A DNA stretch of 64,000 nucleotides from Kudoa neothunni. Its lineage: Eukaryota; Animalia; Cnidaria. This document shows positions 1 through 53,186 of the stretch, piece by piece. Position numbers and translations under genes: made by a program. Under the pieces are notes generated by a model. The model made no database searches. It was given only the letters and a program-made list of their open reading frames with translations, and was not told the DNA's origin. The first letter of the stretch is position 1, and the number at the start of each line of letters is the position of its first letter. The stretch lies in contig OZ199838.1 of the NCBI GenBank assembly GCA_964304625.1, forward strand, positions 14,262,261 through 14,326,260. The letters run 5' to 3'.

Positions 1-1338
1 TACCGTGAATCTAATAGTTTGTAAGTTGCATCAATTAAAAGTAGCTCTGGGGAAAAAGAAAAACCCTTCTTCATTTCTTCATTCAGTAATAATATTGCGT
101 TAACTTGATTGTTATCGCCAGCAAATATTCTCACATCATAAATATAATCAACGTTGAGCAATTGATAAATATAGTTGATATTTATTTTATTCGACAAATT
201 TATTTCGGAATTGTATCTTGACTTCAATGTAATTTTTTCTAGGTCTCTTGTTGGATTTAAGATTGCAACAAGTTTTTGTTGGCTCCCTAAGAAATTAACT
301 ATGATATTATATCATTATTCTTATCCAATTTGAGCTGTGGTGGTAAATAACTGAAAAAATTTCCATCTCTCTCGTGATTATGATCCAAATTGAAGGATTT
401 CATTTCAAGTGTTTGTCCATCGGGACTAACACTCAAGGATACATGAACCGGGCAGTTTCCTTTTAAAGTCTGACATTGTCTTATACCTTTTGATCGGTAT
501 CGATACTGATTGCTAAAATAGCATACATATTTTATTGAATAATAGATTAAATCCTCATTGAACGCTTTAATGAGAATTCGCTTGATAATGCTAATTTTTT
601 TGGAATCTCGCGTCATTAAGTTGCTTTAAGTCTTCTGTTCATATAATTGAATAGAATCTATAAGATGCCTAAATGGGGTAAACTTTTTGCCCACTTCAAA
701 ATATCGGTTCCTATGTTATCCTCCATCGCATTAGATTGCACAGGAGTTATCTGTGTAAAACCGAAATATTTCTTTTCAGCTAAGTAATTTACATAAATTC
801 ATAACAAAAACCATAATACATGCTATCCTTGAACTAATTATTCACATTTGACTTGATATTTAATGAATTATATTTGAAAAAATTAACCTTATAAGGTGTC
901 ATGCGTTGTTAGATACGACTTTATAAACATTAAACAGAATAAATTATTTAATATATAAACGACATTAAATATTGGGTTATATGTTTGTATTACTAATTAA
1001 TTTGGCGGACATCAGTGATTTTAAGCCACGAGGTCTTAATGACTTAACACTGCCAATCTTTCCATTATGATAATAACCAACCTTGAAAATTTAAAGTAAA
1101 TTCCATGTTCAAGCATTATAACTTCTATAGTTAACATTATCTAACTTTATATAGGCTTTAACGGTCCAATATTCATCGACAATGTCAATATTTACATGTG
1201 GAAAATTCAACGATGAATATTTAACAAGAAATTTAACAACCATTTAGGAAAAATTACGACTAAAAAGTTAATGAACAGTGGAGATTCAAATAATTTAAGA
1301 ATTCGGAGAAATTCATCAGCGTCTCAATAGCCAGTCCC
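1..1338 (-). mobile_element. MULE (Mutator-like, ZSWIM-type) DNA transposon, degenerate; runs off the window edge
   Basis: The minus strand gives broken transposase: FEVGKKF...RDSK, ORF 299-616 (CPVHVSL...HNHE), and FSPELLLIDATYKLLDSR at 1-65 with the first catalytic D motif. The terminus GGGACTGGCTATTGAGACGCTGATGAATTTCTCC at 1338 resembles the termini at 5450 and 11979. Confidence 0.7.
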
Positions 1339-2600
1339 TTTTTTTATTACTTGTATCAACAATATAAAAATAGTGTAAACCCTAAAAATACATATTTATT
1401 ATTTAGGTTTTGAATATAAAGTGAAATATTAAGACATATTTTACAATCTACTTCAATATTTTTTCGTGATTTAATGTTTCAAGCGTTTTAACCTAATATA
1501 ATTAATTTACTGAGATGTATTATCTATCAAAATGTTTGTAAAAATTAGTAACAACCGCAAACCGTTGGAATAATGAAACCCCTATCTAAATCCTTAATAA
1601 TCCTCACTTCAACACATAATCACCCTCGTTTTTTAAAAAATTTTCATCGACCCTCTATCTTTTAAAGGTCTAACTATCGTTAATCTATAGCGACAATCTT
1701 CTAAGATTTTTGTCGTTATTTCCATACACGTAATGTTTAGACGAAATATATTTTTTAATACTTCACTAGAATTAATATTTATAAAATAAATAATTGAGGT
1801 TACAAACATTTATAATTGCATGCAATAAAAATATTTTGTTTCATTTTCAAGTTAAAAAAAATTGAGAAAAACAATTTTCTTCTCCATATGTAGGTTTACG
1901 TGTTTTATAAGTATTCTAAAAATTATAACATCAACGGAAGCCGATTATTAGAGTTATGATAAAAAAGACGTATCTTGGGATCTCGGTAGACCCCACTTGG
2001 AACCGTAAGGGTTAATAATATATACTTGAGTGTAAAATTCATTAAATTTATAGGATTTTAAGTTGAAATATGTTTAACCCCGGCAGCCAAAATTTCAATT
2101 ATTATCGAGCTACTCTAAGGGTTTAATAGTTCTATAATTATTATAAACTGTTAGATATATACATAATGAAAATTCAGTTATTTTAGTTGAAGTATGCTAA
2201 GGAGAATGGGTTTATTAGGTTAGTGACTAAAAATCCTGTTCTTTTCCATTAAACTAAAATGTTTTATAAATTAAGTTTAATGTATTTACCTACCTATTCA
2301 ATAAACTATAAGATATGAATACATTGGCTATTCTATAAATATCTTGAATAGATTCATTTGTTCTTAATCCGCCTATATATCCATGAAGAATATAAATTTA
2401 TTTTTTGTACTACAACAAAGCCTTGGTCTTTAAAAAATAAATATTTTACTTTTGATTATTATTATTATTAAATGAATTTTTAGGTGTGATAAAGAGCTTG
2501 CATACTAACTCTTTAAGATTTTATCATCGTACATTGAAGATTTATTTTTATTGTGTTTAATTATTCCGAAAAAAGATTAATAGCGAAGAATTAATAAAAC

Positions 2601-4313
2601 ATGAGGTTATCGATTTTGTTTTTATTTTCAACAATTCTCACAACGAGTAATATATTGCTTATTAACATTATTTAATTCCATTATGCATATTAAGTATGTT
2701 GTCACAAGTATTTCATCCGACAAATGGTACGTCCAATAGTAGTAGTTGAAGAAGTAATAACAAGATCAGAAAGTGATTCTCATTCAAAAATTTTAACACC
2801 AAATAGTCAGTTGGTTTTGATGAGATCCGAAGATGATGTTAATCTAAGTACTGGTGGTGCCGTTGCTGGTGAGGCCGGTGATGGAATTAGCCAACCCGAA
2901 ACTGAAACTGGCGCTGTTGGTGAAGCTGAACCTGGTGTTGTTAATGGAGCCGAAACTGACGCTGATGGAGATGATGATGATGAGAGTAGTAGTGACTCTT
3001 CGGCTGATCCTACTTTAGCAACTGAGAATACAGAATCTACAACCACTGCCGCCCCTATTGAAACCACAATAAACCCTGAAGATATACCTATAGTTGATCA
3101 AGAAATTTCCAAATACATGGATGAAATCACAATTCATTTAAAGGGAGATGAAAAAGAGGATTGCAAAATAGAACATTTGTTTAGAAATGGAGTAAAAGCA
3201 AAATTTAATGAGACTATGTGCCAGATAGCTGATGTGGCCACTGAAGTTGTATGCGAAGCCAAATGTAATCAGAAAGTTGTGATTAAAGTCAATAGTGGAA
3301 GATTGGTACATTATTTCAGAATTACTGAAGGTACAAACCTCAATATATTAGCAGTTCCAGCCGGTAAATAAGAATGGTTAGTTGTTAAGCTTATTCTTTA
3401 ACAGATATGCCCAGACGCCCTGAAACTAATGTAACTCTAAGTGAAGAAGAAGCCCGTTTCGGAGTTAATAATTTCTGCACGGACAATTACAGATGCCGAG
3501 TTAAAAGCACCCAGGGTGATAAAACTTTAGCTAAAGTAGAAAATAACAGCTGTGATCTGTACAATATGACTATACCGATTCGTTACTCAACATCAAGTGC
3601 CTATTACTCCTACTGTGGAGCTAACCAAGCTAAAGTCATGTTTTATGCCAACAAGTCCTTTTACAATAAAGATAACAAATACAAATATGTTCCCTTCACT
3701 GTTACTCAATCAGCAAATCGACATAATAATTTCCCACTAGAAGTGAAAAATCCCTATATGAACAATGAAATCTGCAATTTCCAAATAAAAGGAAGTTCCA
3801 ATGCCTACGTAGATAAATGTAGCCAAGCTGGAAGTAGTGAGGGTGACAAATGCTATAAATATTGTGGCGGAGCTACCACTTTAGAAACGACAAGTGAATC
3901 TCAGGAACTCGAAAGCTATACAGTCAAAATCTCCACTAAATATGGAAATCAAGAATACAAAATTAAAGGTATATGCCGAATGAATTTATAAAATTTATCG
4001 TTATATAGCAAAAAAAAATACAGTGGAGGTATCCGATATCACAGCAACTTCAGCTGCTTATCAAGTTTCTAGCCCTGAAGGGTCTCTCAGTTGTTTCCCA
4101 TCCTTGGTACACGCGAAACTTCCTGGTATACCAATGACTGCAATATGCGGGGATGACAGAAATGTAATTTGCCCTACAACGTGCACCACAAATACACCAT
4201 TAAAACTTTTAACCCCCAACACAGCATATATACTTGAGATGATAATTGGCACTGCGAAAGATAATGAAGGCAAATACGTTGTTAACACATTTTTCGCCAC
4301 AGGTATTCATATA

Positions 4314-4344
<31 letters not shown>

Positions 4345-5271
4345 TTATTTATTTAATATGATTAGAAAAAATAAAATTCGATAACACAAAGGCATCGTTT
4401 TTCAATGACACAATGATTTTGACTCCAGGAGTAGAGAGTAATTATGAGCCATATCTCCCAAAAATGAAATGTTACGTGAGATACTCTCGATTTCAAAGAC
4501 CAAGAAAGATAGTAGCAATCTGTTCTGATGGAAAACCATGTTGGGGTTTATGCTCCCAAAGATTTGAAGTGGTGAATTTGCCAGTAAACGTCACATTAAA
4601 TATTGAGTTGGTTCACGCTGGTCATATTGATTATCCAGTTTATCAAGTGTCGCAATTATTAAGTGAATAAATATTAATGTGGTAACATTAAACTACGACC
4701 TTTTAGGATCAAATAATAATAAAGCTAAATCAGAAATAACTTTCAATTATGACGAAAAGAAATTAACAATCATACCAGACGAAAATCAACCAGGGAATTT
4801 ATGTAATGTGGTTATTTACGCAGTCAATCCTAAAGATTCCAATGATAAATTCTTATTTGAGAAAATAGGAAAACCAACTGATCAAGATATTGATTGTGCA
4901 AGCTCCGTTGTATTTGACAATATAGATATAAATTACAGTTATCAGTTATTGTCTGGTGATGGACAGTCTGCAGAACTTATTGAAGAAATTGAAGTTGGAA
5001 GTAAATTATCATGTTATTTTTTTATTGTTATATAATTTTGTATAGAACAAGGATCTGGGTAACAATAATAATTATATTAATTTTGAATTTTTACTATTTA
5101 TTTTTTATTTATATAGTGGTTGGATGAAGAAGAACTGGTGGATGTAATTTTCATATGAAAATACATTACAAAATTTCATAATTCTTTTTATTTAGTATCT
5201 TCGCAGTATTAGGTGCTTTGGGTGTGGTTATTGGTGCAGTGGCCTATGTGGCGAATAAATCTAGTGATTGA
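2601..5271 (+). CDS. Orphan type I membrane surface protein, copy A (9 exons, 759 aa): signal peptide, acidic/Thr-rich region, repeated Cys-containing FN3-like modules, C-terminal TM helix and 5-aa tail
   Basis: Exons spliced by hand, all GT-AG and in frame: 2601-2646, 2695-3363, 3405-3968, 4009-4302, 4366-4662, 4707-5000, 5046-5058, 5117-5143, 5196-5271. The N-terminus reads MRLSILFLFSTILTTICC; the C-terminus reads WWIIFAVLGALGVVIGAVAYVANKSSD*. Exon 4 has FN3-like VSDITATSA and LTPNTAY. Confidence 0.85.
4321..4342. repeat. (TA)n microsatellite in intron 4 of the surface protein gene
   Basis: TA run; one unit shorter in copy B (~15462-15485), as the offset changes from 11141 to 11139. Confidence 0.9.
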
Positions 5272-7390
5272 ACCTCCCTCTTCTTTCTACTAGGAAAAGC
5301 ATAAGTTTACTTTTTATGAAATCATAGATATTATTAACCTTTTTACAAAAATATTTATTTTGTCGATAAATGGTGTCTACCAATTTTCGGAAAATTAGAA
5401 TTAAATTATGACAGTGACTATTACAACGCTAGCGTATAATCCCTCGTCAGGGCTGTCTATTGCCGCGACAGCGAATTTCTTTGAATCCTAAGAATGCTTA
5501 GAGTTATGATTTCCTTTAATACTTAAACATATTTTTATCTATTAAATTTTAAATTTTCGCGTTAAAATTTACTGTATAGATTTATGATAAAAATCAGTGA
5601 CTTAAAAATCTAAAATATCAGTTTATTTATATACACAAAGTGACCGTTGAACTAATTTTTGATTTTATATTATCACAATCGAGTATTTCTAGACTGCTTT
5701 AAGCCCTAATTCGATGATCCATCCTCAAATCGACCTAACTAAATCAAATCTATTATAAGTACACAATCTGTATGTGAAAATATATAAAGGTTTTTTTGTT
5801 CGTTAAATGATATTTTACCTGATCTTTTAGGGTATATAAAATGGATAACTCTGAAAAAGAGTATTAAAGTGTTATTTAAATATACTTACAAAATTTGTAA
5901 TACCTATAATTTTGAATTATGTTCATATTTAATACTAATAATTATAAATAATAAATAATTTTTCCTCATTAATGTGAATTTTGTAAGATATTTCGAATAC
6001 GCGAGAATAAGAGATAATATAAGGCAATGTTGAACGTATCTTTTAAGTAAAGAGAAGATTTATCTAGTTTCATCAGCTAAAATATTCTTTAGTTATACGA
6101 AAGAAAAATCATTATGTTACTTAATAGATAGAGATTTAAAGGATTAATTATGTCAAACGTGTTCTCTTCCAAAAAATTTAATGGGGAATTAAAATACTGT
6201 TATACTTAGTACATTTTTTATTTTGGCAATCATTGTTGTAACAGACCGAAGTGTGTAAGAGAGGCTTAAACTTTGTTAGACACCTGCCAGACTCATATTA
6301 AGGTAGGAGTCAGCTCCGATGGAAAAAAAATAAAGTAAAATTTTTACACCTAACACATAACCACAGCAGAAGTCAGGTTTTCTTCATGTGTACTGACACA
6401 ACGTAAATTAGACCGAAATAGTAAATTAATATCAAAATTAATTTCTATTTTTGTCAATGAAAAAATGCTGCAGTCTAAAATACAGTAAGAAACGGATGTA
6501 ATAATTACACTCAATTCCATATATTATTTGAAAAAAGCATTTTTCTAACGTAATAAAATCAACTATTTCTATAAGATTTTAACTCTGGATCATAAGGGTG
6601 ATGTTAGAATTCTCACTGAGTATGCGAATCGGCTTCGTGCAATAATATTTATAGAAGATGAGACGAAGAAGGTTTTATCCTTTTATCTAAAACTACTTTG
6701 TGTAGATGCAACCTAAAAATTACTTGGATCACGATAAAAACTCATTATTCATAATTCATTCATTTTTAAACTCTCAATTACATTAAACTCTCTTCAATGT
6801 TCCCCAATACCTAACAGTTAACGATTTTCCCTGGAACGAGTCATATAAGTAACGCACGTATTATTAATAAAAAAAGTTATTTTAAACTATTATATTCATG
6901 AATTAATGTCTATTCTGTCATTGATGAAGGAGAAGGTATTTTCTGTAATCACCAGCAAGGATTTAAAACTCTCGAAAATCTTGGAAAACAATTATCTGAA
7001 CGTTAAATTAATTTATGTAAATTTAACGTTTTTCAGGTTTTTGAGTGGTAGATATTGCTTTAAATATCCAATATCACGCGTGAATTAAAAGATTCAATGC
7101 TAGAAATTCTTCAAAAAATAATCTTCGTTAGAAATTAAGCTGATTATCAGAAAATGTACACTGAGCTTAACAGCTAAACGTTGAGGATCTTAATTTGTAG
7201 TTGAAAAAGAATTGGTATCTAATTAGATCACAGTGAATTAATTTATGAGACAATATAAAATCAACCAAATCGATTGGAATTCTGAAGTTTTAGTTTTAAT
7301 GTGTCTTCCTACATTTTTTTCAGATTTTACACTTCCTATACGCCTAAAGCAGTATGAAGGTTAAGGGATTTTAGAATGACTGCAATCGGG

Positions 7391-7486
7391 TGTAATATGT
7401 ATTTTGCGCTAATAAAAACCCCTTTTATCAAAGCACAAATAATCCGATCATCAACCGGCTGCTGCCGGTTAAGTTGGTACGCTACA
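7391..7486 (-). repeat. 3' LTR (96 bp)
   Basis: Identical to 11452-11547; preceded on the minus strand by the polypurine tract GGAGGGGAGGAA (7487-7498). Confidence 0.95.
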
Positions 7487-10400
7487 TTCCTCCCCTCCAT
7501 AAATTTGAAAACCATCATATTTTGACGGTAATAATATTGCTCTACCACTTGAGGTTATTGTAGTTGGATTCTTTATTGGATGGTTTGAATAGCCGGAGGA
7601 TTTAGGAGGTGGCATAATCTTATTAAATGGTTTCGAGGTTCTAATAGTATCATTGAAGTGTACGTTTAGCAATTTATCATCAGAATCTTGAACAGTGTAT
7701 ACCAATCCATTTCTTTTGATAATTCTGTAAGGTCCTTCATATTTCGGTGATAATGATGTTACTTTTCTTTTTTTGATTAAAACATAATCTCCAATCGGGT
7801 GTGACTTTAGGCGGCAGTTCCGATTGTAATATTTGCACTGTCTCAGTTGTGATTGCTTAATGTTTGATAAGGCTGATTTTGATAATACTCTTAATCTTTT
7901 CTCTAACTCTTTAGCATAAGTATGAATATCGGAATTCGATGTTTTCTCTGAAACAAAAACATTTTGGCTTGGGGTTCGTAACTCTCTACCGTAAATTAAT
8001 GAAGCTGGCGTGTAACCAGTAGTCGATGAGATAGTTGTTCTGATGGCAAAAAGAGCATAATCAAGGATTTCATCCCAGTCTCTCGTGCCTTGTTCATAAA
8101 GAATAGATTTGAGTTTTGTTTTCAAATTGCGAACTTGTCTTTCTGCCAATCCATTCCCTTCAGGATGATAAGCTGTTGAATGGCTGTGGTTTATTTGTAG
8201 TGATTTGCACACATCATTAAATAAGCGAGATTCAAATTGACTACCTTGATCAGTATGGATGCGTTTAGGAACTCCATGGCGCGATACAATTAGGCTCACT
8301 AAAGCATCCGCCGTTGATTTGGCGTCGATAACTTGAAGTGGGCAAGCTTCAACCCATTTACTGAATTGATCAACAAATAGAAGAATATATCTATTTCCCA
8401 ACTTAGTTCGCTCCAGAGGACCAATGAAGTCGGCATGCCACATGAAAGCTTGGGATGTAACAGGTATCGGCATTAAGGGCGCTTTAGGCTTAGAGTTTTC
8501 CCCTTTGATTTTGTAGCAAGTTTCACATTTAGACACAAAGTTAGCAACATCAACGTCCATATTGGTCCAATAACAAGTTTTTCGAATTTTGTTAAGTGTT
8601 TTATTCACACCGCAATGTGCCGTTTCCTGGTGGATACAGTTGATCATATGAGTTTGAAGTTTCTTAGGGACTATTGGAAGGTTACCGTTTCTAGATTGAT
8701 GATAAAGGATTCCATTTTCAATATTGAGATTTCGTTTTCTTTGCCAGAGTTGCCACGCAGATTTGCTTTTCAATTTCCTGACGTTTCCACTTTCTATAGC
8801 TTCTTTAACTTGGACAATCATGGGATCGGTTTTTTGTTCAGACATCAATGTACTAATATCAATATTGGGTGTTATCATAGCAATACTTCGAGAGAGAGCA
8901 TCGGCGCATTGGTTGTTTTTCCCTTGAATATATTTAATTTCAAAATCGAACTCCTCCAATTCCAAAATCCATCGAGCTCTGCGACCACGCGGATCTTTAG
9001 AATTTTTTAGATATACAAGTGGGTTGTGGTCTGTATAGATAATAAAACGGCAACCGAGTAAATAAGGTCTGAACTTTCTTATTGCATGGATGATCGCCAA
9101 TGCTTCCTTGTCTATAGTTGAATACTTTTGTTCGGTTTTGTTTAATTTGTGACTAGTATAAGCAACAATGCATCTTTTTGTTTCTTGAAACAGGACGGCC
9201 CCTGTGGCCACGTTGGAAGCATCAGTTTCAATTGAGAAGGTTTTTGAAAGGTCTGGAAAACACAGTTCAGGAGATTGTTTAACTAGCTCTTTGATCTTCA
9301 AGAAGTGGTTTTGGCATTGATCATTCCAACAGAAAGGATGCGATCGTTCTAGCAATTGTGTCAGAGGAGCGGAAACGTCAGCCAAATTTTCAAGATGTTT
9401 ATGTAAAAAGTTTACTGTGCCCAAAAAACTTCTGAGATCGTCCCTGTTAGATGGAGTTTTCCACTTCAAGATAGAGTCGATTTTCTCTGGATCGCATTTG
9501 ATGCCATTTTTCGAAATAATAAAGCCAAGATACTTAAGTTCATTTTGGTAAAACTTACTCTTCGAAAGATTAACACGAAGATTCTCTCGAAGCAATATCC
9601 TCAGGACTGTTTTAACATGCTTGGTATGATCGGTTACATTTCGAGAGAAAATTATTATATCATCTAGATACGCCATGGCATTAGGAACATTTTTCAGTAT
9701 AGCATCCATTCCTCGTTGGAATGTTGCCGGAGCATTCGACAAGCCAAATGGCATCTTGATAAATTCAAAAAGACCAAGACCATTCCCAGGAGAAAACGCG
9801 GTTTTGGGAATATCTTCTTCCGCGACGGGTATCTGCCAATATCCACACTGAAGGTCAAGTGTGGTGAAGATAGTTGATCCAGAGAGCACGTCTAATGTAT
9901 CTTCCAGTCTGGGGAGTGGATATTCATCTCGCTGAGTAATATTGTTGAGTTTGCGATAATCCACGCACATCCTAGTCTTACCATCTTTTTTTGGAACCAA
10001 AACTACAGAAGAGCACCAGGGACTACTTGATGGGCGGATTATATTATTGCGGAGGGCATCCTCTACCTGCTTGGTGATTTCATCTTTATAATGTAAAGGC
10101 AGTCTGTATGGCTTGGTTACGACTGGTTTTGAATAGCCAGTATCGATGGTATGGTAAATGGATTTTGCAGTAAGTAGATCATTGACACTTGTTGCGAATA
10201 CAGTTTTGAATTCATCTAATACATCATTTGCCAACTTATTCAGACTGGTATTAGCATTGTTATCCGAAAAATTCACATTAGCAGTTATTGCATCGGTAGC
10301 ACCATCATGGAATACATTTGCACCAGTAGACTTAAGAAAATCTCGACCAATAATAGCATCATAAACCAGGGTTGGGGTAACAAGGGCATCAAAGGGCGAA

Positions 10401-10723
10401 AATTTATTATCCCATTGTACATTTACGGGTACTAAAGATATGACTTTTATAGGAGACCCAGAGGCCGTATACAAGTTCAAATGTGTTGGTTGATAGGGGC
10501 AATTTTTTGGTATAATTGAAGACTTTATAATTGTATACGCAGAACCGGTGTCAATGATGGCTTTGAAAGTTTTAGAAGAATAAGGAAATGAAATTAAAGT
10601 AGTCCAAGGTTGCGTTGGAACATCCGGGCTCTGTGTTGTAAGGCAAGTAAGATCTAGTGTTGTCGGGGGAACCGTTTTTGACCTCCAGTTCCCCCTCTTA
10701 AGTTTCCCAAATAGCTTCGGCAT
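7469..10723 (-). CDS. pol: Gypsy Pol polyprotein (protease, RT, RNase H, integrase)
   Basis: 1084-aa ORF with AIIDTGS protease, YLDD RT, ETDASN RNase H, HHCC zinc finger, DDE integrase (WHADF, TDQG, LAER) and GPY/F motif (YEGPY). Probably expressed by -1 frameshift from gag. Confidence 0.97.
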   Translation of the reverse strand: MPKLFGKLKRGNWRSKTVPPTTLDLTCLTTQSPDVPTQPWTTLISFPYSSKTFKAIIDTGSAYTIIKSSIIPKNCPYQPTHLNLYTASGSPIKVISLVPVNVQWDNKFSPFDALVTPTLVYDAIIGRDFLKSTGANVFHDGATDAITANVNFSDNNANTSLNKLANDVLDEFKTVFATSVNDLLTAKSIYHTIDTGYSKPVVTKPYRLPLHYKDEITKQVEDALRNNIIRPSSSPWCSSVVLVPKKDGKTRMCVDYRKLNNITQRDEYPLPRLEDTLDVLSGSTIFTTLDLQCGYWQIPVAEEDIPKTAFSPGNGLGLFEFIKMPFGLSNAPATFQRGMDAILKNVPNAMAYLDDIIIFSRNVTDHTKHVKTVLRILLRENLRVNLSKSKFYQNELKYLGFIISKNGIKCDPEKIDSILKWKTPSNRDDLRSFLGTVNFLHKHLENLADVSAPLTQLLERSHPFCWNDQCQNHFLKIKELVKQSPELCFPDLSKTFSIETDASNVATGAVLFQETKRCIVAYTSHKLNKTEQKYSTIDKEALAIIHAIRKFRPYLLGCRFIIYTDHNPLVYLKNSKDPRGRRARWILELEEFDFEIKYIQGKNNQCADALSRSIAMITPNIDISTLMSEQKTDPMIVQVKEAIESGNVRKLKSKSAWQLWQRKRNLNIENGILYHQSRNGNLPIVPKKLQTHMINCIHQETAHCGVNKTLNKIRKTCYWTNMDVDVANFVSKCETCYKIKGENSKPKAPLMPIPVTSQAFMWHADFIGPLERTKLGNRYILLFVDQFSKWVEACPLQVIDAKSTADALVSLIVSRHGVPKRIHTDQGSQFESRLFNDVCKSLQINHSHSTAYHPEGNGLAERQVRNLKTKLKSILYEQGTRDWDEILDYALFAIRTTISSTTGYTPASLIYGRELRTPSQNVFVSEKTSNSDIHTYAKELEKRLRVLSKSALSNIKQSQLRQCKYYNRNCRLKSHPIGDYVLIKKRKVTSLSPKYEGPYRIIKRNGLVYTVQDSDDKLLNVHFNDTIRTSKPFNKIMPPPKSSGYSNHPIKNPTTITSSGRAILLPSKYDGFQIYGGEECSVPT

Positions 10724-11430
10724 ATTCTTCTAAGGTGACCCTGTTTTCCACAGTATGAACAGATTGCGTCGCGTCTACAAACCGATGTTTTGTGATTGAA
10801 GCTTCCACATTGTGAACATTCGTTCGTTTGAGTTCTATGGGCTTTGTTATCATTCTTATATCCATATTTTTGATGAATTGCAGAGACATTAGAAGTTTCG
10901 GGTTCATTTCCAATACAGCAGACGTCATTTCTCTTTTCTAACTTGGAGTACAACTCCACTTTTTCGATGATCTCTTCGAGACTCAACTTATTTTCAGCCT
11001 TCAAAACAAGTTTCAATGTATCATTTGGAACACATTCGATGACTTTCGGTCTCAAAAGAAAGTTTATATCATCTTGACTCATGTTTGGTCTCGCTATTCT
11101 CATATATTCAAGAAGACGTTTGACATATGAGTCGATGTTTTCGCCTGGTCTTATGGAGCTACAAAGCAATTTATTCCACGAATCCAGAGGGCATTGCTTG
11201 TTTTGAGCATAGGCAAACAATGTTTCTACGGAGTGCATTGAATTTACCCAATTCTGATACTCCTATCTCATTCGGAAAGCAGAGAGATTCGATCCTCAGC
11301 AGGTATGGCTAGGGCAGCAAAAGCATAGAGCTGATCTTCATTCCATTGGTTAGCAACCGCCATTAGCTCGAGGGTTTTCAGCTGATCGCATATTGGTTTT
11401 GCAAAGTCAAATTCAAATGTAAAACTTCAT
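10654..11430 (-). CDS. gag: Gypsy Gag (5' part frameshifted in this assembly)
   Basis: ORF 10654-11238 has two CCHC knuckles (CSQCGSFNHKTSVC, CSYCGKQGHLRRIC). Gag-like LELMAVANQWNEDQ lies upstream in another frame. Confidence 0.8.
10665..10708 (-). promoter_or_regulatory. -1 ribosomal frameshift signal (gag-pol)
   Basis: Slippery heptamer G GGA AAC in the gag frame (10702-10708), 6-nt spacer, then a 10-bp stem GGGGGAACTG/CGGTTCCCCC. The -1 frame is the pol ORF. Confidence 0.8.
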
Positions 11431-11436
11431 GTTAAA

Positions 11437-11450
11437 CACGTTCGGCGCCA
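11437..11450 (-). promoter_or_regulatory. Primer binding site, tRNA-Lys-like
   Basis: TGGCGCCGAACGTG lies 1 nt after the 5' LTR; it is close to the tRNA-Lys1,2 PBS TGGCGCCCAACGTG. Confidence 0.75.
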
Positions 11451-11451
11451 A

Positions 11452-11547
11452 TGTAATATGTATTTTGCGCTAATAAAAACCCCTTTTATCAAAGCACAAA
11501 TAATCCGATCATCAACCGGCTGCTGCCGGTTAAGTTGGTACGCTACA
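11452..11547 (-). repeat. 5' LTR (96 bp)
   Basis: Identical to 7391-7486 and followed by the PBS. Confidence 0.95.
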
Positions 11548-13738
11548 TCGGGAAGAAAAGAAAAAATAGTAAACTACGTAATTTAATTATAAATTCATGA
11601 ATGTAATTAAGTTTGTTGGTGTGTTGTCAATCATTGTTGTGTAATGTTTTCTATTTATCATAGAATTCAAAGATACTCGAAGTTCAATCCATGATTATAT
11701 GATCCTTATTTACGACTTACGAATTCGATGTTGTGTCTAAGATATCTATTAGTTATTTTTTCAACTTTGTAAGTAAATAATTTTATCATAAAACATTTAA
11801 TAATAACTAAGAAACTATCACAACAAGTGTGAAAAATACGCGGTTATATGTTAAAAATGTCAAAAATTAGGTGAATGAATTTTTATGGTAAAAAAGTTCT
11901 CAATAAAAATACGTAAACAGAAATATATAATATTGTGTGGTTATGGAGAAATTTGTTTTCGTGGCAATAGCTACTATCCTAAATTATTTTCTTCTTTATG
12001 CTATCTTATGAACGTTTTATAAAAGATGTTTTAAACATACTAAACAAATGCTAAAACTCAGGTTTACTTGCTCATATTTTTGATCTAGTATATCTGAAGT
12101 ATTTTCAACTATGATTTTAGAAAATTGCTCATAAAATAATATATTTAGAAAATTTTAATTAATTTATATATTTGTTTGTGTTTTTTATTTGATATTCTTT
12201 AATAAGACATCATTATTGGCAAAATATTTCTCTTACATAAATTAAGGTATAGCTCATTTACGCAATGTATCATTAATACAAAAAATAAATAAATAATCTT
12301 TAAACTTTGATGTAGATGCTTACTATTTTGTAGGTGGCATGAACAGTTCTTAGGTATAGTTGGAACGTTGTTTTTTACATTAGGTTTTATCTTTGTGGCT
12401 TGACGTTTTTGTGTCGTGAATCAAATCACGAGATCGAGTTACACATAGGGCATTAGCCAAAACATTCTGTTATAACTTGAGAGAACGAATTTTTATTGCG
12501 CACTTGAATTAAGAGGAATAAATGCGAAAACAATTTTTTGTTTAGATCCGTACAACAAATTTTCGTATAGGGATAGGAAAAAGGGAAAATGTATAGTTTG
12601 GTCCTATTTGGATTATTTCGAATTCGAAATTAGCCGAGTTTTAATTAAAAAATTTAAAATCATGTTACAAAATAGAACTAGAAGAAAATATTTACAATTG
12701 GATTTAACATTTTTGGCTTCAAGAGTATAACTCACTCAGTCGTCGCGATAAAATTTAGGTAGTGGCTATATCTCATGTACTTGATAATTCGGTTGCGCCT
12801 AGCCTATATCTCGGAGAATGAATACCTCTAAAACTATTGTGTATATTTTATTCATATTTTATATATTATCTAATATTTATTTAAATTAATTTTTCGTGAT
12901 TTATAGAAAAATTTGAAGAAGAATTAATTTTCAGTAATGCAACCATCTTGAGCCCATCAATATTCAAGTGAAATTATCATAATTTTTTTAAAAATTGGAA
13001 TAAAAAATCAATTCACAATTTATGAGTTATAAAAATTATTTAAAAATAACATTTATTCAAGAAAAAACTGTAAAAATATGAATAAAAAATAATTGTTTTA
13101 AATTTTTTAAATATTATGTATATCCTAGTTAATAGTACAAATTTACATAATTCATTATATAATCTTAAGTATAAAATTTGTTAAATACACAGGATTTCAA
13201 AATGAAATATTTTCAACCCGGTCACCAAAACTGCAGTTAGTTTAGAGCTGCTCTTAGGATTAAATAGTTCTATAATTGCTTAATATTGGTAGATATATAA
13301 AACGTGTAAATTTAGTCGTTGTAATTAAGTCCAACAAGGAGAAAGTACGCTATTGTGTTGGTGATTCGAAATCCTGTTCTTTTCCATTAAACTAAAATGT
13401 TTTATAAATTAAGTTTAATGTATTTACCTACCTATTCAATAAACTATAAGATATGAATACATTGGCTATTCTATAAATATCTTGAATAGATTCATTTGTT
13501 CTTAATCCGCCTATATATCCATGAAGAATATAAATTTATTTTTTGTACTACAACAAAGCCTTGGTCTTTAAAAAATAAATATTTTACTTTTGATTATTAT
13601 TATTATTAAATGAATTTTTAGGTGTGATAAAGAGCTTGCATACTAACTCTTTAAGATTTTATCATCGTACATTGAAGATTTATTTTTATTGTGTTTAATT
13701 ATTCCGAAAAAAGATTAATAGCGAAGAATTAATAAAAC

Positions 13739-15454
13739 ATGAGGTTATCGATTTTGTTTTTATTTTCAACAATTCTCACAACGAGTAATATATTGCTTAT
13801 TAACATTATTTAATTCCATTATGCATATTAAGTATGTTGTCACAAGTATTTCATCCGACAAATGGTACGTCCAATAGTAGTAGTTGAAGAAGTAATAACA
13901 AGATCAGAAAGTGATTCTCATTCAAAAATTTTAACACCAAATAGTCAGTTGGTTTTGATGAGATCCGAAGATGATGTTAATCTAAGTACTGGTGGTGCCG
14001 TTGCTGGTGAGGCCGGTGATGGAATTAGCCAACCCGAAACTGAAACTGGCGCTGTTGGTGAAGCTGAACCTGGTGTTGTTAATGGAGCCGAAACTGACGC
14101 TGATGGAGATGATGATGATGAGAGTAGTAGTGACTCTTCGGCTGATCCTACTTTAGCAACTGAGAATACAGAATCTACAACCACTGCCGCCCCTATTGAA
14201 ACCACAATAAACCCTGAAGATATACCTATAGTTGATCAAGAAATTTCCAAATACATGGATGAAATCACAATTCATTTAAAGGGAGATGAAAAAGAGGATT
14301 GCAAAATAGAACATTTGTTTAGAAATGGAGTAAAAGCAAAATTTAATGAGACTATGTGCCAGATAGCTGATGTGGCCACTGAAGTTGTATGCGAAGCCAA
14401 ATGTAATCAGAAAGTTGTGATTAAAGTCAATAGTGGAAGATTGGTACATTATTTCAGAATTACTGAAGGTACAAACCTCAATATATTAGCAGTTCCAGCC
14501 GGTAAATAAGAATGGTTAGTTGTTAAGCTTATTCTTTAACAGATATGCCCAGACGCCCTGAAACTAATGTAACTCTAAGTGAAGAAGAAGCCCGTTTCGG
14601 AGTTAATAATTTCTGCACGGACAATTACAGATGCCGAGTTAAAAGCACCCAGGGTGATAAAACTTTAGCTAAAGTAGAAAATAACAGCTGTGATCTGTAC
14701 AATATGACTATACCGATTCGTTACTCAACATCAAGTGCCTATTACTCCTACTGTGGAGCTAACCAAGCTAAAGTCATGTTTTATGCCAACAAGTCCTTTT
14801 ACAATAAAGATAACAAATACAAATATGTTCCCTTCACTGTTACTCAGTCAACTACGGCACAAACCAACTTCCCTCTAGAAGTGAAAAATCCCTACATGAA
14901 CAATGAAATCTGCAATTTCCAAATTAAAGGAGATTCCGGTGGCTACGCAGATAAATGTAGCCAAACTGGGAATAGCCAGGATGACAAATGCTACAAATAT
15001 TGTGGCGGAGCTACTACTTTAATAAAGTCAGGTGCATCCAGTCCTCTCAATGAATATACTGTCAAAATCACCACTAGACAAGGACATGAAGAATACAAAA
15101 TTAAAGGTACACGCTTAATGAATCTATGGTTCACAATTTTTAATAGATAAGAAAAATAAAGTTATGGTATCTGATATCACAACAACCTCAGCTAATTATA
15201 TAGTTAATGATCTGGAACCTAACAGCCATCTATGTTTCCCATCATTGGTACACGCGAAACTTCCTGGTATACCAATGACTGCAATATGCGGGGATGACAG
15301 AAATGTAATTTGCCCTACAACATGCACCACAAATACACCATTAAAACTTTTAACCCCCAACACAGCATATATACTTGAGATGATAATTGGCACTGCGAAA
15401 GATAATGAAGGCAAATACGTTGTTAACACATTTTTCGCCACAGGTATTCATATA

Positions 15455-15491
<37 letters not shown>

Positions 15492-16410
15492 TTAATATGA
15501 TTAGAAAAAATAAAATTCGATAACACAAAGGCATCGTTTTTCAATGACACAATGATTTTGACTCCAGGAGTAGAGAGTAATTATGAGCCATATCTCCCAA
15601 AAATGAAATGTTACGTGAGATACTCTCGATTTCAAAGACCAAGAAAGATAGTAGCAATCTGTTCTGATGGAAAACCATGTTGGGGTTTATGCTCCCAAAG
15701 ATTTGAAGTGGTGAATTTGCCAGTAAACGTCACATTAAATATTGAGTTGGTTCACGCTGGTCATATTGATTATCCAGTTTATCAAGTGTCGCAATTATTA
15801 AGTGAATAAATATTAATGTGGTAACATTAAACTACGACCTTTTAGGACCAAATAATAATAAAGCTAAATCAGAAATAACTTTCAATTATGACGAAAAGAA
15901 ATTAACAATCATACCAGACGAAAATCAACCAGGGAATTTATGTAATGTGGTTATTTACGCAGTCAATCCTAAAGATTCCAATGATAAATTCTTATTTGAG
16001 AAAATAGGAAAACCAACTGATCAAGATATTGATTGTGCAAGCTCCGTTGTATTTGACAATATAGATATAAATTACAGTTATCAGTTATTGTCTGGTGATG
16101 GACAGTCTGCAGAACTTATTGAAGAAATTGAAGTTGGAAGTAAATTATCATGTTATTTTTTTATTGTTATATAATTTTGTATAGAACAAGGATCTGGGTA
16201 ACAATAATAATTATATTAATTTTGAATTTTTACTATTTATTTTTTATTTATATAGTGGTTGGATGAAGAAGAACTGGTGGATGTAATTTTCATATGAAAA
16301 TACATTACAAAATTTCATAATTCTTTTTATTTAGTATCTTCGCAGTATTAGGTGCTTTGGGTGTGGTTATTGGTGCAGTGGCCTATGTGGCGAATAAATC
16401 TAGTGATTGA
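13739..16410 (+). CDS. Orphan type I membrane surface protein, copy B (9 exons, ~760 aa)
   Basis: Same exon structure as copy A; identical protein except for the patch encoded at ~14847-15245 and one S>P change at 15848. Confidence 0.85.
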
Positions 16411-17561
16411 ACCTCCCTCTTCTTTCTACTAGGAAAAACATGATTTTATTTTTTATGAAACGACAGATATTATTAGCCTTTTTATAAAAAAATTTATTTT
16501 GTCGATAAGTGGTGTCTACCAATTTTTTGAAAATTAGAATTAAATTAGTTTCTTCTTTATGTTATTTTTTGAGTATATTATAAAAGATGTTTGAAAACAT
16601 AATAAAGCAATGCTAAAACTCAGGTTTACTCGTTACTGTTTTTTGATTTAATTTATTTGAAGGATTTCCTATTAATATTTTAGAAAACATATCATAAAAT
16701 TATATGTTTGGATAAATTTAATTAATTTATACCTTTATTCGCGTTCCTTATATAATATCATTTAATAAGACATCCTTATTGGAAAAATGAGTCTCATACA
16801 AATTAAGGTATAGCTCATTTACGCAATGTATCATTAATACAAAAAATAAATAAATAATGTTTAAACTTTGATGTAGATGCTTACTATTTTGTAGGTGGCA
16901 TGAACAGTTCTTAGGTATAGTTGGAACGTTGTTTTTACATTAGGTTTTATCTTTGTGGCTTGACGTACTTATTACAAAAACAATTTTTTATTTAGCTACG
17001 TACAAAAAGATTTTCGTATAGGGAGAAGGGAAATTGCATAGTTTGATCCCATGTTGGTTGCTTTGTATTCGATATTATAAAACTTTTAATTATAAAATTT
17101 AAAATCTAGTTATAAAATAGAACCAGAATAAAATAATTACAACCAGATTTAACATGTTAGACTTGAAGAATATCACCCTCTGGTTGCGATCAAATTTAAA
17201 CAAGAAATAAACACCAAAATCAGATTTTGACGAACGTTGGATATCATTATAAGATGCATCATATTTTTTTAAGTAAGATAAATTTTCATAATGTAACTGA
17301 TGGAATAAAATGAATTGATACCGAAGAACGAATGGCAATATTTATCGTATGCAAGAAAAATACGATTGGAGATATGTTTATAACATTGATTAATCTGCAT
17401 TGTTTTAGCAGAAAAAGATTGAACATATTTTTAGTTTCAATTTTATGATTATTAAATGGCAAGTATGCCACGTTTAGGGTATTCAGATTTAGATTTAAAT
17501 CGTCGAATTTATCAGGATGGTTGGACGTTTTTTTCGAATTATTTCGGAATGGGCGCCTTAA

Positions 17562-21752: not shown

Positions 21753-23470
21753 ATGGCATCGAAGATAGGGCATGGCGTCATTCCAGAAGAACTTGACTAC
21801 GATGAGGCAGGAATTTCTACCGAAATCAACGAAACTTCCAAGGCAGATGATGCAACCCAACTCAAAGGGTCCTATTCCAGCATCCACAGTTGTGGTTTTA
21901 AAGACTTTTTGTTAAAGCCCGAACTGTTACGTGCTATTATGGACTGTGGTTTCGAGCATCCCTCAGAAGGTGTATAATTTTGCTTTGAATTATCCATTTC
22001 CATCTTGGAATTTACTACTGAGAACTTCTTCTAATGCTATTCTATGTATACAACAGTGCAACATCAGTGTATTCCACAAGCGGTACTCGGAGTGGATATC
22101 ATCTCACAAGCAAAGAGTGGTATGGGAAAGACTGCTGTGTTTGTTTTGGCAACTCTACAACAGTTGGAACCCGTTGATGGTCAAGTTAGTGTGTTGGTGC
22201 TGTGTCATGTTCGCGAGTTGGCATTTCAAATTCAAAAAGAATATGAACGATTTTCACGCCACTTTGTCAATATACGTTCGGCTGTGTTCTTTGGAGGAGT
22301 TTCCATCAAACAAGATGAAAAAACTTTAAAGACCAACCCACCTCACATAGTTGTTGGAACACCCGGTCGTATACTTGCTTTGGTGCGGTCGAAAGCGCTC
22401 AACCTGAAAAATGTGAAACATTTCATTATTGATGAGTGCGACAAAGTTTTGGAGAAAGCTGGTATTTGTCGCCGAACTGCTGTTGGCTGGTTGGCGACCC
22501 TTGTGTAATGGCTGATTTGTAGATATGCGAGAAGATGTTCAAGAGATATTCAAGGCTACTCCCCGTCAAAAGCAAGTGATGATGTTTAGCGCCACTCTAA
22601 ATGATGAGATCCGACCCACTTGCAAACTATTTATGCATAATGTAAGTGTCCATTTTTGCAATCAACAATATTATTCAATGTGCCCTCTGTGATAATGTGG
22701 ACGATTGTTGATGTTGTACCTGAAATGCTCTCAATAAGTTAATGTAATGATAGCCGGTGGAATTGTACATCGATGATCAAACCAAACTGACCCTTCATGG
22801 ATTACGCCAACACTACGTTAAGGTGAGAGATAACGAAAAGAATAGAAAACTTATTGATATCTTGGATTCTTTGGAGTACAACCAAGTAATCATTTTTGTC
22901 AAATCCGTTCCTCGTTGTGTTGCGCTTGCTGATCTACTGAATGAGCAATCTTTCCCCTGTATTGCTATTCATTCGTCAATGCCACAAGAAGATAGGTAAC
23001 TCTTTTGTGACTTTGTTCGACTATTTTATTATTGATATTGATTCGTTGCTTATTGGTAGATTGGAGAAGTACGCCGAGTTCAAAAATTTCAAAGCACGAA
23101 TTCTTGTCTCAACCAATCTTTTTGGTCGTGGAATCGACATTGAACGGGTCAATATCGTCATCAATTACGATATTCCTGAAAGCACTGACACCTACCTTCA
23201 CAGAGTAGATAAACTTTATTGGAAATGATTTAATTGTTGTAGGTTGCTCGTGCAGGTCGTTTTGGAACCAAGGGTCTTGCTGTCTCGTTCGTTACTGACA
23301 AAGAAGATGCTAAACTGATGAATTCCATCCAAGATCGTTTCGATGTGTCTATTACTGCGCTACCTGATGACATCGACCCCAATCTTTACAGTATGATTGC
23401 TATTTTATTTTTTCAGTTCTTTACTGATTTATTTTTTTTATTTCTAGTCGAACACGATGATAAGAATTGA
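21753..23470 (+). CDS. DDX39B: DECD-box RNA helicase UAP56/DDX39, spliced
   Basis: [50 protein letters not shown] and [13 protein letters not shown] motifs. Introns include 21970-22056, 22462-22522 and 22642-22753. Ends ...IEHDDKN*. Confidence 0.97.
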
Positions 23471-28481: not shown

Positions 28482-29449
28482 TCACCACTTTTTCTTTTGT
28501 TCATCTAGGCTGACGTTGCCAGGGCCGGTGGAAACCAGCACAAGCATACCTCCAATTATTGACATATTTTGAAAGAATTCAAATCTGTAATAATCATGCA
28601 GATGACTATGAGAAGGGTAGCCCCAGAAACGATTAAGGAAAATGTTTAGTAGAAATAGATAGGTGGCGGCCAATGATCCAGCCAGCATAGTTTTATATCC
28701 GATAAGGAACAAAATCATCAAAACCGTAGAAATAATAATTCTAACAACAACCAGCATCGAAGTGAACTCCTCATTGAGCATAGAAACAACAAACATAAAA
28801 GTGAGAAGCACTCTTCCGCACAATTGAAGATAGGAGTCAGTTGTGTTGCCGTAATCATTGATGGGCGGCAACGATCCAAAAAGAACTTCGTTGGCCACTG
28901 CTGGTGGTCTGCATGTGACATACAACAGGATAAGACCTCCCAAAAGTGACATCACCCTAACAAATAACAAAAAATATGTTACGATTCGTATGTTGAAAAT
29001 ATCCAATATCACTACCTCAACATATAAATATAATCGGTGAATGTACGATAAGCAATAGCCTACAAACAAATAACAGATCAAACATTCGAATCTAATCCTT
29101 AAACCCAACCAATAACGATGAATACCTGAAAAACAACCGTCGATGCCAACATCGTAATACTACAAACTTCATACTTTTTAAAGATGATAAAGAAACACGG
29201 AATGATCTGACAGAAAAAATTTATCAACACAATTACTGATGCCACAGACCAATGGCATTTCCATAATTGCTCAAAAAACTCCTTTTGAGGTCTAAATTGG
29301 TAGTACATTCGAAACCCATCTTCAATGTAGGTTGACAACAAACATATCTTCGCAATCAATGGAATAAATTTTCTAAACCTTTTCCACTGTTCATGAGCCA
29401 CATACTCCGCTTCATCAATTTTGGTGGAATATTCACCAAATAAATCCAT
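28482..29449 (-). CDS. SURF4: Surfeit locus protein 4 / Erv29 ER cargo receptor, spliced
   Basis: IAKICLLSTYIEDGFRM, LQLCGRVLL, IGYKT, YYRFEFFQNMSIIGGML and GPGNVSLDEQKKKW* (dilysine ER-retrieval end). Two short introns join in frame. Confidence 0.95.
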
Positions 29450-52700: not shown

Positions 52701-53186
52701 CAAAATTTTTCAATCACATGGATTAATGAAGGTGATTGGGGCTACTTTTAATGATTTCTCCTTTTCAACTTGGAAATATTGCGTATCTTCAATGTATCTC
52801 ACCATACGTTTGGCACGTTCACGTATATAGTTTCCTTTATCTTTGCCTTCTTGGTCCACAAACATGAACATAGTCAATGAGTTCATTACGGCTGATGTGG
52901 TTGTTAAAAGTTTGTACATGTCGGGATGCCCGTGAAAAACCAAAAATTCAAACACAATCAATGATTTGAGCACATGTCTCCAATTTTTTGGTTGATCATT
53001 CAGGCGTCTATACAGAATTTGGTAGATTTCGTGTTGAGATTTCGGATGGTAGGTATGCTGAGCCAACTCATCCAACTCTACCGTGCTTGGAAACCATGGA
53101 TCGTTGGAGGTAGCTTCTATACATTTGACTTCGGGTATTGTGCGATTTTTTACCACATTTTTCACCGATCGAATCACTCTTGACAT
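49709..53186 (-). CDS. EPN: Epsin (ENTH, UIM, clathrin boxes, NPF repeats), spliced; internal frameshifts in the assembly
   Basis: ENTH ORF 52710-53186 (EATSNDPW, KNWRHVLKSL, GKDKG..IRERAK). UIM EEEDLQLQLALAISKQEA at ~52475-52530, LVDLDF at ~51780, several NPF motifs at 49750-49900. The 3' end is approximate. Confidence 0.88.
50429..51234 (-). mobile_element. Internally deleted pogo-like element in an epsin intron
   Basis: Homologous to both ends of 31570-33476; TIR (T)AGTGACTTATGGG...CCCGTAAGTTACTG|TA. Confidence 0.75.

Follow-up and report, generated by a model that had tools for sequence, protein, structure and literature searches.

Mosaics made by non-allelic gene conversion, in which one variable region escapes homogenization, are known from the gene arrays of immune receptors and of parasite surface antigens. 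Allorecognition receptors of the immunoglobulin (Ig) or fibronectin type III (FN3) type with a hypervariable distal domain are known from Hydractinia (Alr1/Alr2) and Dictyostelium (TgrB1/C1). In Myxozoa, variant surface protein (VSP)-like genes of a different, CXXC-rich kind have been reported for Sphaerospora molnari (bioRxiv 10.64898/2026.02.11.705288), and in the literature searched we found neither a Kudoa surface-protein family nor gene conversion in Myxozoa described. Here, we analyzed a 64,000-nucleotide stretch of Kudoa neothunni DNA (assembly GCA_964304625.1, contig OZ199838.1, positions 14,262,261 to 14,326,260 of the forward strand; hereafter the window), which carries two tandem genes, A and B, predicted to encode membrane proteins with six ectodomain modules (D1-D6). 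Given the evidence presented below, non-allelic gene conversion very probably overwrote the scaffold of A and B on either side of D3, and the unconverted D3 stretch holds old, partly foreign DNA. A and B resemble the mosaic families mentioned above in that their conversion tracts include introns and promoter, their flanks are diverged, trees of different segments are incongruent, and one exposed-looking domain shows old divergence. They differ in that the family, the fold variant and the lineage are undescribed, and in that they are known here from the genome sequence, with a ratio of nonsynonymous to synonymous divergence (dN/dS, omega) below 1.

A 2231-5298 and B 13369-16437 were found to be the same sequence apart from one patch (3709-4103 in A, 14847-15244 in B) and three small differences. 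To the left of the patch, BLAST, MAFFT and a base-by-base list agreed on 0 differences in 1478 bp; to the right, 1195 bp contain the three differences, namely a synonymous G/A at 4181, a TT indel at 4344-4345 within intron 4, and a T/C at 4709 that changes Ser to Pro. The identity reaches from -370 relative to the ATG (2601) to 27 bp past the stop codon (5269-5271), and the promoter of 370 bp and introns 1, 2 and 5-8 are the same in both copies, intron 4 being distinguished by the TT indel only. When the MAFFT alignment was scored in 50-column windows, identity was 100% over 2231-3708, 58-96% from 3686 to ~4130, 96-100% up to 5298, and 40-50% outside. BLAST of both regions returned a single alignment, 2012-5408 against 13151-16547, and the flanks beyond it gave no further alignment with BLAST or MAFFT. 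The downstream flank of A resumes at 11980-12406, where it matches B 16541-16966 at 86%, which identifies 5409-11979 as inserted DNA and gives an ancestral tandem period of ~4.56 kb. Between A and B sits a Ty3/gypsy long terminal repeat (LTR) retrotransposon with a pol open reading frame (ORF) of 1084 aa (7469-10723; protease, reverse transcriptase, RNase H and integrase domains) and an upstream ORF of 194 aa (10654-11238); its terminal repeats of 97 bp are 100% identical, suggesting a recent insertion. As judged from the diverged flanks, A and B are old tandem paralogues.

The patch contains 104 differing alignment columns, and in B a 5-nt insertion and a 2-nt deletion add a net one codon. 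It spans D3 from about its sixth residue, intron 3 (3969-4023) and, at the start of exon 4, 26 codons that are predicted to form the first strand of D4. At the protein level, 37 substitutions and the one-codon indel were counted in 113 aligned codons, every Cys and the frame are retained, and the GT..AG splice sites of intron 3 are intact in B. Divergence is uneven, A and B being ~82% identical in 3709-3898 and ~65% in 3899-4103. The synonymous divergence (dS) of the patch was 0.43 and the nonsynonymous divergence (dN) 0.26 (omega 0.60, Nei-Gojobori), and dS was 0 in the adjoining blocks; for the D3 strands alone, dS was 0.27 and dN 0.06. About half of the positions of intron 3 differ, and the silent-site values resemble those between distinct paralogues. 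Since divergence at silent sites and in intron 3 is as high as at replacement sites, the patch represents old DNA and no mutational hot spot, and point-mutational hypervariability was ruled out as its origin.

An earlier reading made from the letters of the window (the sequence-only reading) had proposed that A and B are near-identical, introns included, from -370 to just past the stop, that only one other residue differs in the whole protein, that the flanks are diverged and the duplication is old, and that the patch covers 3709-~4103 and 14847-~15245 with all cysteines and the frame kept. The alignments bear this out: the other residue is the Ser/Pro at 4709, flank identity falls to ~70% upstream and ~88% downstream, and the patch of B ends at 15244. 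Its hand count of ~39 substitutions and a one-codon indel in ~130 codons was correct for the indel and is revised to the figures given above for the substitutions and codons.

Gene A was modeled with nine exons separated by introns of 35-60 nt, of which introns 2-6 are phase 1 with GT..AG borders; the last small exons were deduced from the frame and from conservation among paralogues. Positions in A are converted to B by adding 11138 before the patch, 11141 after 4104 and 11139 after 4345. The predicted product consists of an N-terminal hydrophobic signal, an acidic low-complexity stretch, D1-D6, a short stalk, one transmembrane helix and a six-residue tail. Five of the modules are ~95 residues long: exon 2 ends with D1, exon 3 encodes both D2 and D3, and exons 4 and 5 encode D4 and D5, respectively. 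The spacing C-x15-19-C-x6-11-C-x3-C is common to D1, D3, D4 and D5; D2 has another four-Cys spacing, and D6 (exon 6) is a two-Cys module.

Pfam, profile and fold analyses were carried out exon by exon, each exon being taken singly. No Pfam family, FN3 and Ig included, was found at E <=0.01 for any large exon, and a protein atlas feature search gave no usable match. A profile of exon 3 run against 1.84 billion representative proteins yielded three matches at an E-value <=0.001, none with a name or a credible Pfam match: a single ORF on a 920-nt scaffold of the European Nucleotide Archive (ENA) metagenome ERZ28624939 (L026, 67% identical), a single ORF on a 2349-nt contig of the Logan assembly SRR33849685 (L027, 37% identical), and a 1861-residue multi-repeat protein. 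L026 and L027, which presumably come from other kudoid parasites, also show a conserved D2 and a variable D3. With 13 close paralogues, AlphaFold2 gave a model of too low quality for use (predicted local distance difference test, pLDDT, 43); with 21 sequences, exon 3 was modeled as two all-beta domains at a pLDDT of 62 (D3 64-83). The best Foldseek matches of this model were FN3/cytokine-receptor tandems (E ~1e-4, template modeling score 0.3-0.44), and VIA-align gave Z <=7.7, which lies within the tool's own range for common arrangements. The exon 3 domains are therefore likely to adopt an Ig/FN3-like beta sandwich according to the model, FN3 membership being a separate matter. As part of the interpretation given above, we hold with good confidence that A and B encode a lineage-specific family of predicted single-pass membrane proteins with an ectodomain of four-cysteine beta-sandwich modules, and the predicted architecture would place them at the cell surface.

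Like the VSPs of Giardia and Spironucleus and the VSP-like genes of S. molnari, A and B are multi-copy genes of a parasite whose products contain cysteines, are predicted to be type I and have a very short tail. Unlike Giardia-type VSPs, which have >10% Cys, many CXXC motifs and a conserved tail, the A/B proteins have ~4% Cys, C-x3-C in place of CXXC and the tail ANKSSD; they show no Pfam or sequence matches, and their predicted fold is a beta sandwich. With Alr1/Alr2 and TgrB1/C1 they share a predicted single-pass topology and a predicted tandem array of beta-sandwich domains, as well as paralogues in clusters and a single domain whose variability far exceeds that of the others. In contrast to those receptors, to which they are unrelated in sequence, they vary in the third of six domains and not in the most distal one, and the comparison covers one sample only.

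The ancestry of the patch was assessed with trees and with searches of the assembly (40,260,978 bp in four pieces, of which C2 measures 12,040,071 bp). A third copy, Z, ends the contig before a 200-N scaffold gap (C1:14262061-14262260) that ends at window position 0. In the first part of the patch, the nearest relatives of A, B and Z are found among these three: over 3709-3898 the identities are 82% for A/B, 83% for A/Z and 76% for B/Z, and in the tree of 3709-3879 the A+B+Z clade has a support of 99/96. A different picture was obtained for 3880-4103. There, the best matches of A are L011 (chromosome 2, 80%) and L012/L013 (chromosome 1, 11.02 Mb, 75%), ahead of B, and B is closest to L023, a chromosome 2 fragment (82%). 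In the maximum-likelihood tree of this segment, A joins L011/L012/L013 (96/96), B is sister to L023 (100/99), and a clade of A and B is rejected (log-likelihood difference 31.6; approximately unbiased (AU) test, p 0.0005, for a grouping chosen post hoc). In the trees of D2 and of 4104-5000, A=B falls inside cluster I with a support of 100/98-100. The second part of the patch of A is thus subfamily III-like, and its match to L011 extends through intron 3, which places the exchange at the DNA level. A search of the whole assembly with each patch half found no donor of >=90%, the best matches being 80-83%.

Copy Z occupies window coordinates -4081 to -208 and, compared with window 1-3890, is 95.5% identical overall. 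Its identity is ~98% in the 2.2-kb upstream flank (1-2230) and 97-99% in the conserved exon parts, and is far lower in the acidic region, intron 2 and the patch. The sequence of Z breaks off within the patch and contains three +1 insertions, of which two fall in homopolymers. Z is either a true third gene of the tandem or the other haplotype of A, left uncollapsed; both agree with the way in which it dovetails at the gap, and the depths of the public contigs (2.6-5.5) are too low and noisy to tell an allele from a paralogue. L023, which begins inside the patch region (A coordinate ~3838), was considered as the missing 3' half of Z and was ruled out, the two differing in their 60-nt overlap. 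Two further 200-N gaps lie in or at family genes, C2:7280207-7280406 (the L023 fragment starts at 7280407) and 3225-3424 of L017, which indicates that assembly breaks cluster at such genes.

The subfamily consists of 17 copies or fragments in four genomic clusters. Six distant relatives (L048-L053; 22-25% identity) have the same D2+D3 exon layout, so that the family extends past these 17. Sliding identities were determined for all pairs. The pairs A/B, L012/L013, L014/L015, L016/L021, L020/L021 and L014/L017 are 97-100% identical on both sides of D3 and only 69-81% identical in 100-bp windows placed at 3750 and 3844 of A. The D3 region is thus the exception in near-identical pairs of the three other clusters as well, which makes the pattern a systematic one and no accident of A/B. 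Within clusters, the mean dS was 0.25 in D2, 0.54 in D3, 0.12 in D5 and 0.08 in D6; between clusters it was ~1 in D2-D4. Cluster structure is nearly lost in D3 for clusters II and III. L015/L017, whose D3s are 93% alike, form an exception, and a permutation test on runs of shared polymorphic sites in D3 picked out a run between clusters, L011 with L014/L015 (26 sites, global P ~0.05). Collectively, the scaffold is homogenized within each cluster and D3 stands near the between-cluster divergence, so that D3 systematically escapes concerted evolution. Single-base frameshifts or stops were also observed in otherwise conserved exons of L011, L017, L020 and L021 (among C2, C1 and C3); these copies are either pseudogenes or carry homopolymer errors of the 7x assembly.

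Selection on D3 was assessed by pairwise counting, in which silent sites are partly saturated and recombination is ignored. Omega was 0.03-0.08 in D2, which is very constrained, and 0.07-0.66 in the D3 windows; in 15-codon windows across the family it reached at most 0.74. When D3 was split by predicted secondary structure, omega of the loops was 0.47 pooled within clusters, 0.87 for A/B and 0.90 for L014/L015, and that of the strands was 0.23, 0.24 and 0.16, respectively. Of the A/B substitutions in D3, 22/27 lie outside predicted strands (Fisher P 5e-4). No window or partition (patch, family windows, D3 loops) showed omega >1, and the loop values, close to but below 1, indicate that the loops evolve nearly neutrally. 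The sequence-only reading had attributed the uniform scaffold to gene conversion, and the tracts, the diverged flanks and the excepted module of other pairs sustain this. Its further claim that selection keeps the module different does not find support in a patch omega of 0.6, windows of <=0.74, loops of <=0.87-0.90 and an intron 3 as diverged as the exons. It had named a low dN/dS in the patch together with a lack of further variants as evidence against itself; omega is indeed below 1, but further variants exist in Z, in L023 and in the distinct D3 of each paralogue.

The features of a mosaic are present at this locus: a tract of identity lies within diverged flanks, the introns share the state of their tract, and the segments differ in their nearest relatives. 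Tract structure, silent-site and intron divergence, phylogenetic incongruence and recurrence in other pairs are all directly observed, and from them we infer the number and direction of the conversion events and the cause of the escape of D3. An old tandem duplication would have produced A and B, and an old ectopic exchange would then have given A its subfamily III-like D3 end and D4 start, intron 3 included. Recently, 2231-3708 (-370 to mid-exon 3) would have been converted, as would 4104-5298 (early exon 4 to +27), either separately or with the former in one discontinuous tract. The first part of the patch would be the native, long-diverged D3 of gene cluster I. If Z is an allele of A, B would have overwritten A in a single haplotype. 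Unequal crossing-over was rejected as a source of the two-sided identity, as it would be expected to yield a chimera and a changed copy number.

The passages of the assembly report drawn on here (PMC12239612) describe an assembly of 40.2 Mb with a scaffold N50 of 12.0 Mb, for which hifiasm-meta and YaHS were run on HiFi reads alone from a yellowfin tuna (Thunnus albacares) sample; the parasite k-mer coverage was ~7, with residual haplotypic duplication and almost no parasite RNA reads. Four public runs, all of one sample and with no RNA run among them, contain the stretch, and their short k-mer contigs were placed on window 1-6000 (A side). The contig at 3751-4127 has 0 differences to the patch of A (depth 2.6); the contig at 1948-2260, likewise with 0 differences (depth 3.3), joins the own flank of A to A=B-type sequence where Z differs. 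Contig depth in the unique 3' flank of A was 2.7. One loose contig end before 4092 equals the end of the patch of B, and another ('AAATGTTATCCG' before 4101) represents a further variant.

Several points weigh against our interpretation. The contigs come from the assembly's own sample and hence are not independent, and they are too short to tie the patch to the far flanks. At ~7x coverage, read correction may erase true differences between A and B, so that the identity of 100% is perhaps slightly overstated. The AU p-value is post hoc because the grouping was picked after the identity matrix was seen, and with no donor >80% for the foreign piece of A, the retention of an ancient lineage and the import of this piece out of an unassembled copy are not separable. 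The gene models, moreover, are predictions from sequence alone.

That the identity itself is an artefact, two truly diverged copies having been collapsed or over-corrected in a 7x meta-assembly, we consider highly improbable. The low coverage and the residual haplotypic duplication stated in the same passages of the assembly report (PMC12239612) are compatible with it, as are the 200-N gap with an overlapping contig end (Z) directly upstream and the single-base frameshifts in several paralogues, which are possibly homopolymer errors. However, HiFi reads far exceed the identical blocks of 1.2-1.5 kb (<=1.5 kb), which makes such an artefact unlikely, and the blocks are anchored by unique flanks and the retrotransposon; the k-mer contigs match the junction and the patch of A exactly at the depth of its unique flanks, and the same pattern occurs at four other loci. 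An alternative order of events, in which one long conversion or a recent duplication covered 2231-5298 and a short patch was then replaced from an unassembled third copy, is also unlikely in our view. It needs a single recent long tract and not two, it agrees with the foreign nature of part 2 of the patch of A, and the gaps inside family genes and the additional variant end before 4101 leave room for such a copy; on the other hand, neither patch has a donor of >=90%, part 1 would require a second donor of the cluster I type, and the recurrence of the patch position in other pairs would demand the same two-step history each time.

Considering conversion around a long-standing D3, the question is why D3 escaped. 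A neutral divergence barrier is a serious candidate, although we stop short of calling it probable: D3, the least constrained folded domain, may have diverged first, and a 20-30% difference with indels would then stop heteroduplex or tract extension, the conserved scaffold still being homogenized while D3 drifts on without selection for diversity. Omega <1 throughout, near-neutral in loops only, is in line with this, as is the failure of homogenization in most pairs in the other low-constraint part, the acidic N-terminal region (2735-2975); the tracts end at the onset of divergence and not at exon or domain borders, at positions that vary between pairs. Against a barrier, the acidic region, which is even less constrained, is 100% identical in A/B, so that low constraint by itself does not block conversion, and D3 segments have been exchanged between clusters, so that D3 is not closed to conversion either. 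The other explanation, which we put forward tentatively, is that D3 is a recognition module exposed to ligands or antibodies and that diversifying or balancing selection removes conversions that make D3s alike. It is favored by the escape of D3 in all four clusters, by the excess of A/B changes outside predicted strands, by loop lengths that vary while every Cys is kept, by a loop omega (0.87-0.90 in the least saturated pairs) far above that of D2, and by the life of K. neothunni as a tissue parasite of fish. A break in D3 within otherwise identical DNA should be gap-repaired, i.e. converted, and the persistence of different D3s may therefore hint at a filter. Yet omega nowhere exceeds 1, the silent sites and intron 3 are equally old, and some pairs (L015/L017) share their D3.

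Table 1. Features of the A/B locus in window coordinates, with distant family members on the assembly pieces. Exons (E) are those of the predicted gene A.
Feature	Position	Strand	Remarks
Upstream diverged flank	2012-2230 (homologous to 13151-13368)	+	~70% identity
Left identical block	2231-3708 (= 13369-14846)	+	370 bp promoter, E1, E2 (acidic low-complexity + D1), first half of E3 (D2)
Patch part 1	3709-3879 (B 14847-15017)	+	D3 core; A, B and Z mutually closest, 17-24% apart
Patch part 2	3880-4103 (B 15018-15244)	+	D3 end, intron 3, first 26 codons of E4
Right identical block	4104-5298 (= 15245-16437)	+	rest of D4, D5, D6, stalk, transmembrane helix, stop + 27 bp
Downstream diverged flank	5299-5408 (= 16438-16547)	+	~88% identity
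Gene A	2601-5271	+	nine predicted exons, from sequence, ORFs and exon translations
E1	2601-2646	+	predicted; signal peptide
E2	2695 (or 2740)-3363	+	predicted
E3	3405-3968	+	predicted
E4	4024-4302	+	predicted
E5	4366-4662	+	predicted
E6	4707-5000	+	predicted
E6b	5046-5058	+	predicted
E7	5117-5143	+	predicted
E8	5196-5271	+	predicted; transmembrane helix IIFAVLGALGVVIGAVAYV, tail ANKSSD, stop
Gene B	13739-16410	+	exon structure as in A
Ty3/gypsy LTR retrotransposon	7391-11548	-	between A and B; apparently intact
Distant relatives L048-L053	C2:8.10-8.12 Mb, C3:8.14-8.16 Mb, C1:2.78 Mb, C1:17.10 Mb		

Elsewhere in the window, the public contigs reached a depth of 140-210 at 1400-1800, compared with ~3-5 for unique DNA, and many of them leave into unlike sequence at 1553 and 1634-1638, suggesting a high-copy repeat in the upstream flank of A. 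Housekeeping exons were observed at 22044-22505 (+), 28485-29108 (-) and 52713-53186 (-), for a DEAD-box helicase, SURF4 and an ENTH domain.

Concerted evolution from which a variable region escapes is in itself textbook knowledge; what this locus contributes is a very clean pair, a domain that is repeatedly left unconverted, and a patch of compound ancestry. Myxozoans are economically important fish parasites, and how they persist in immunocompetent hosts is not understood. A homogenized scaffold with one distinct beta-sandwich domain per copy is an obvious candidate for a host-facing or partner-recognizing part of the surface, and D3 offers a precise target for population sequencing, antibody work and expression studies. 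It is conceivable, though we regard it as doubtful, that D3 serves as the recognition or antigenic face in a myxozoan system of variant surface proteins, in which conversion would unify scaffold, promoter and anchor and shuffle D3 between genes and chromosomes while selection keeps the D3s distinct. If this were true, it would provide a molecular basis for the antigenic variation that is suspected, and unexplained, in Myxozoa, or, alternatively, it would mean that a cnidarian-type self/non-self recognition has been retained in a parasite.

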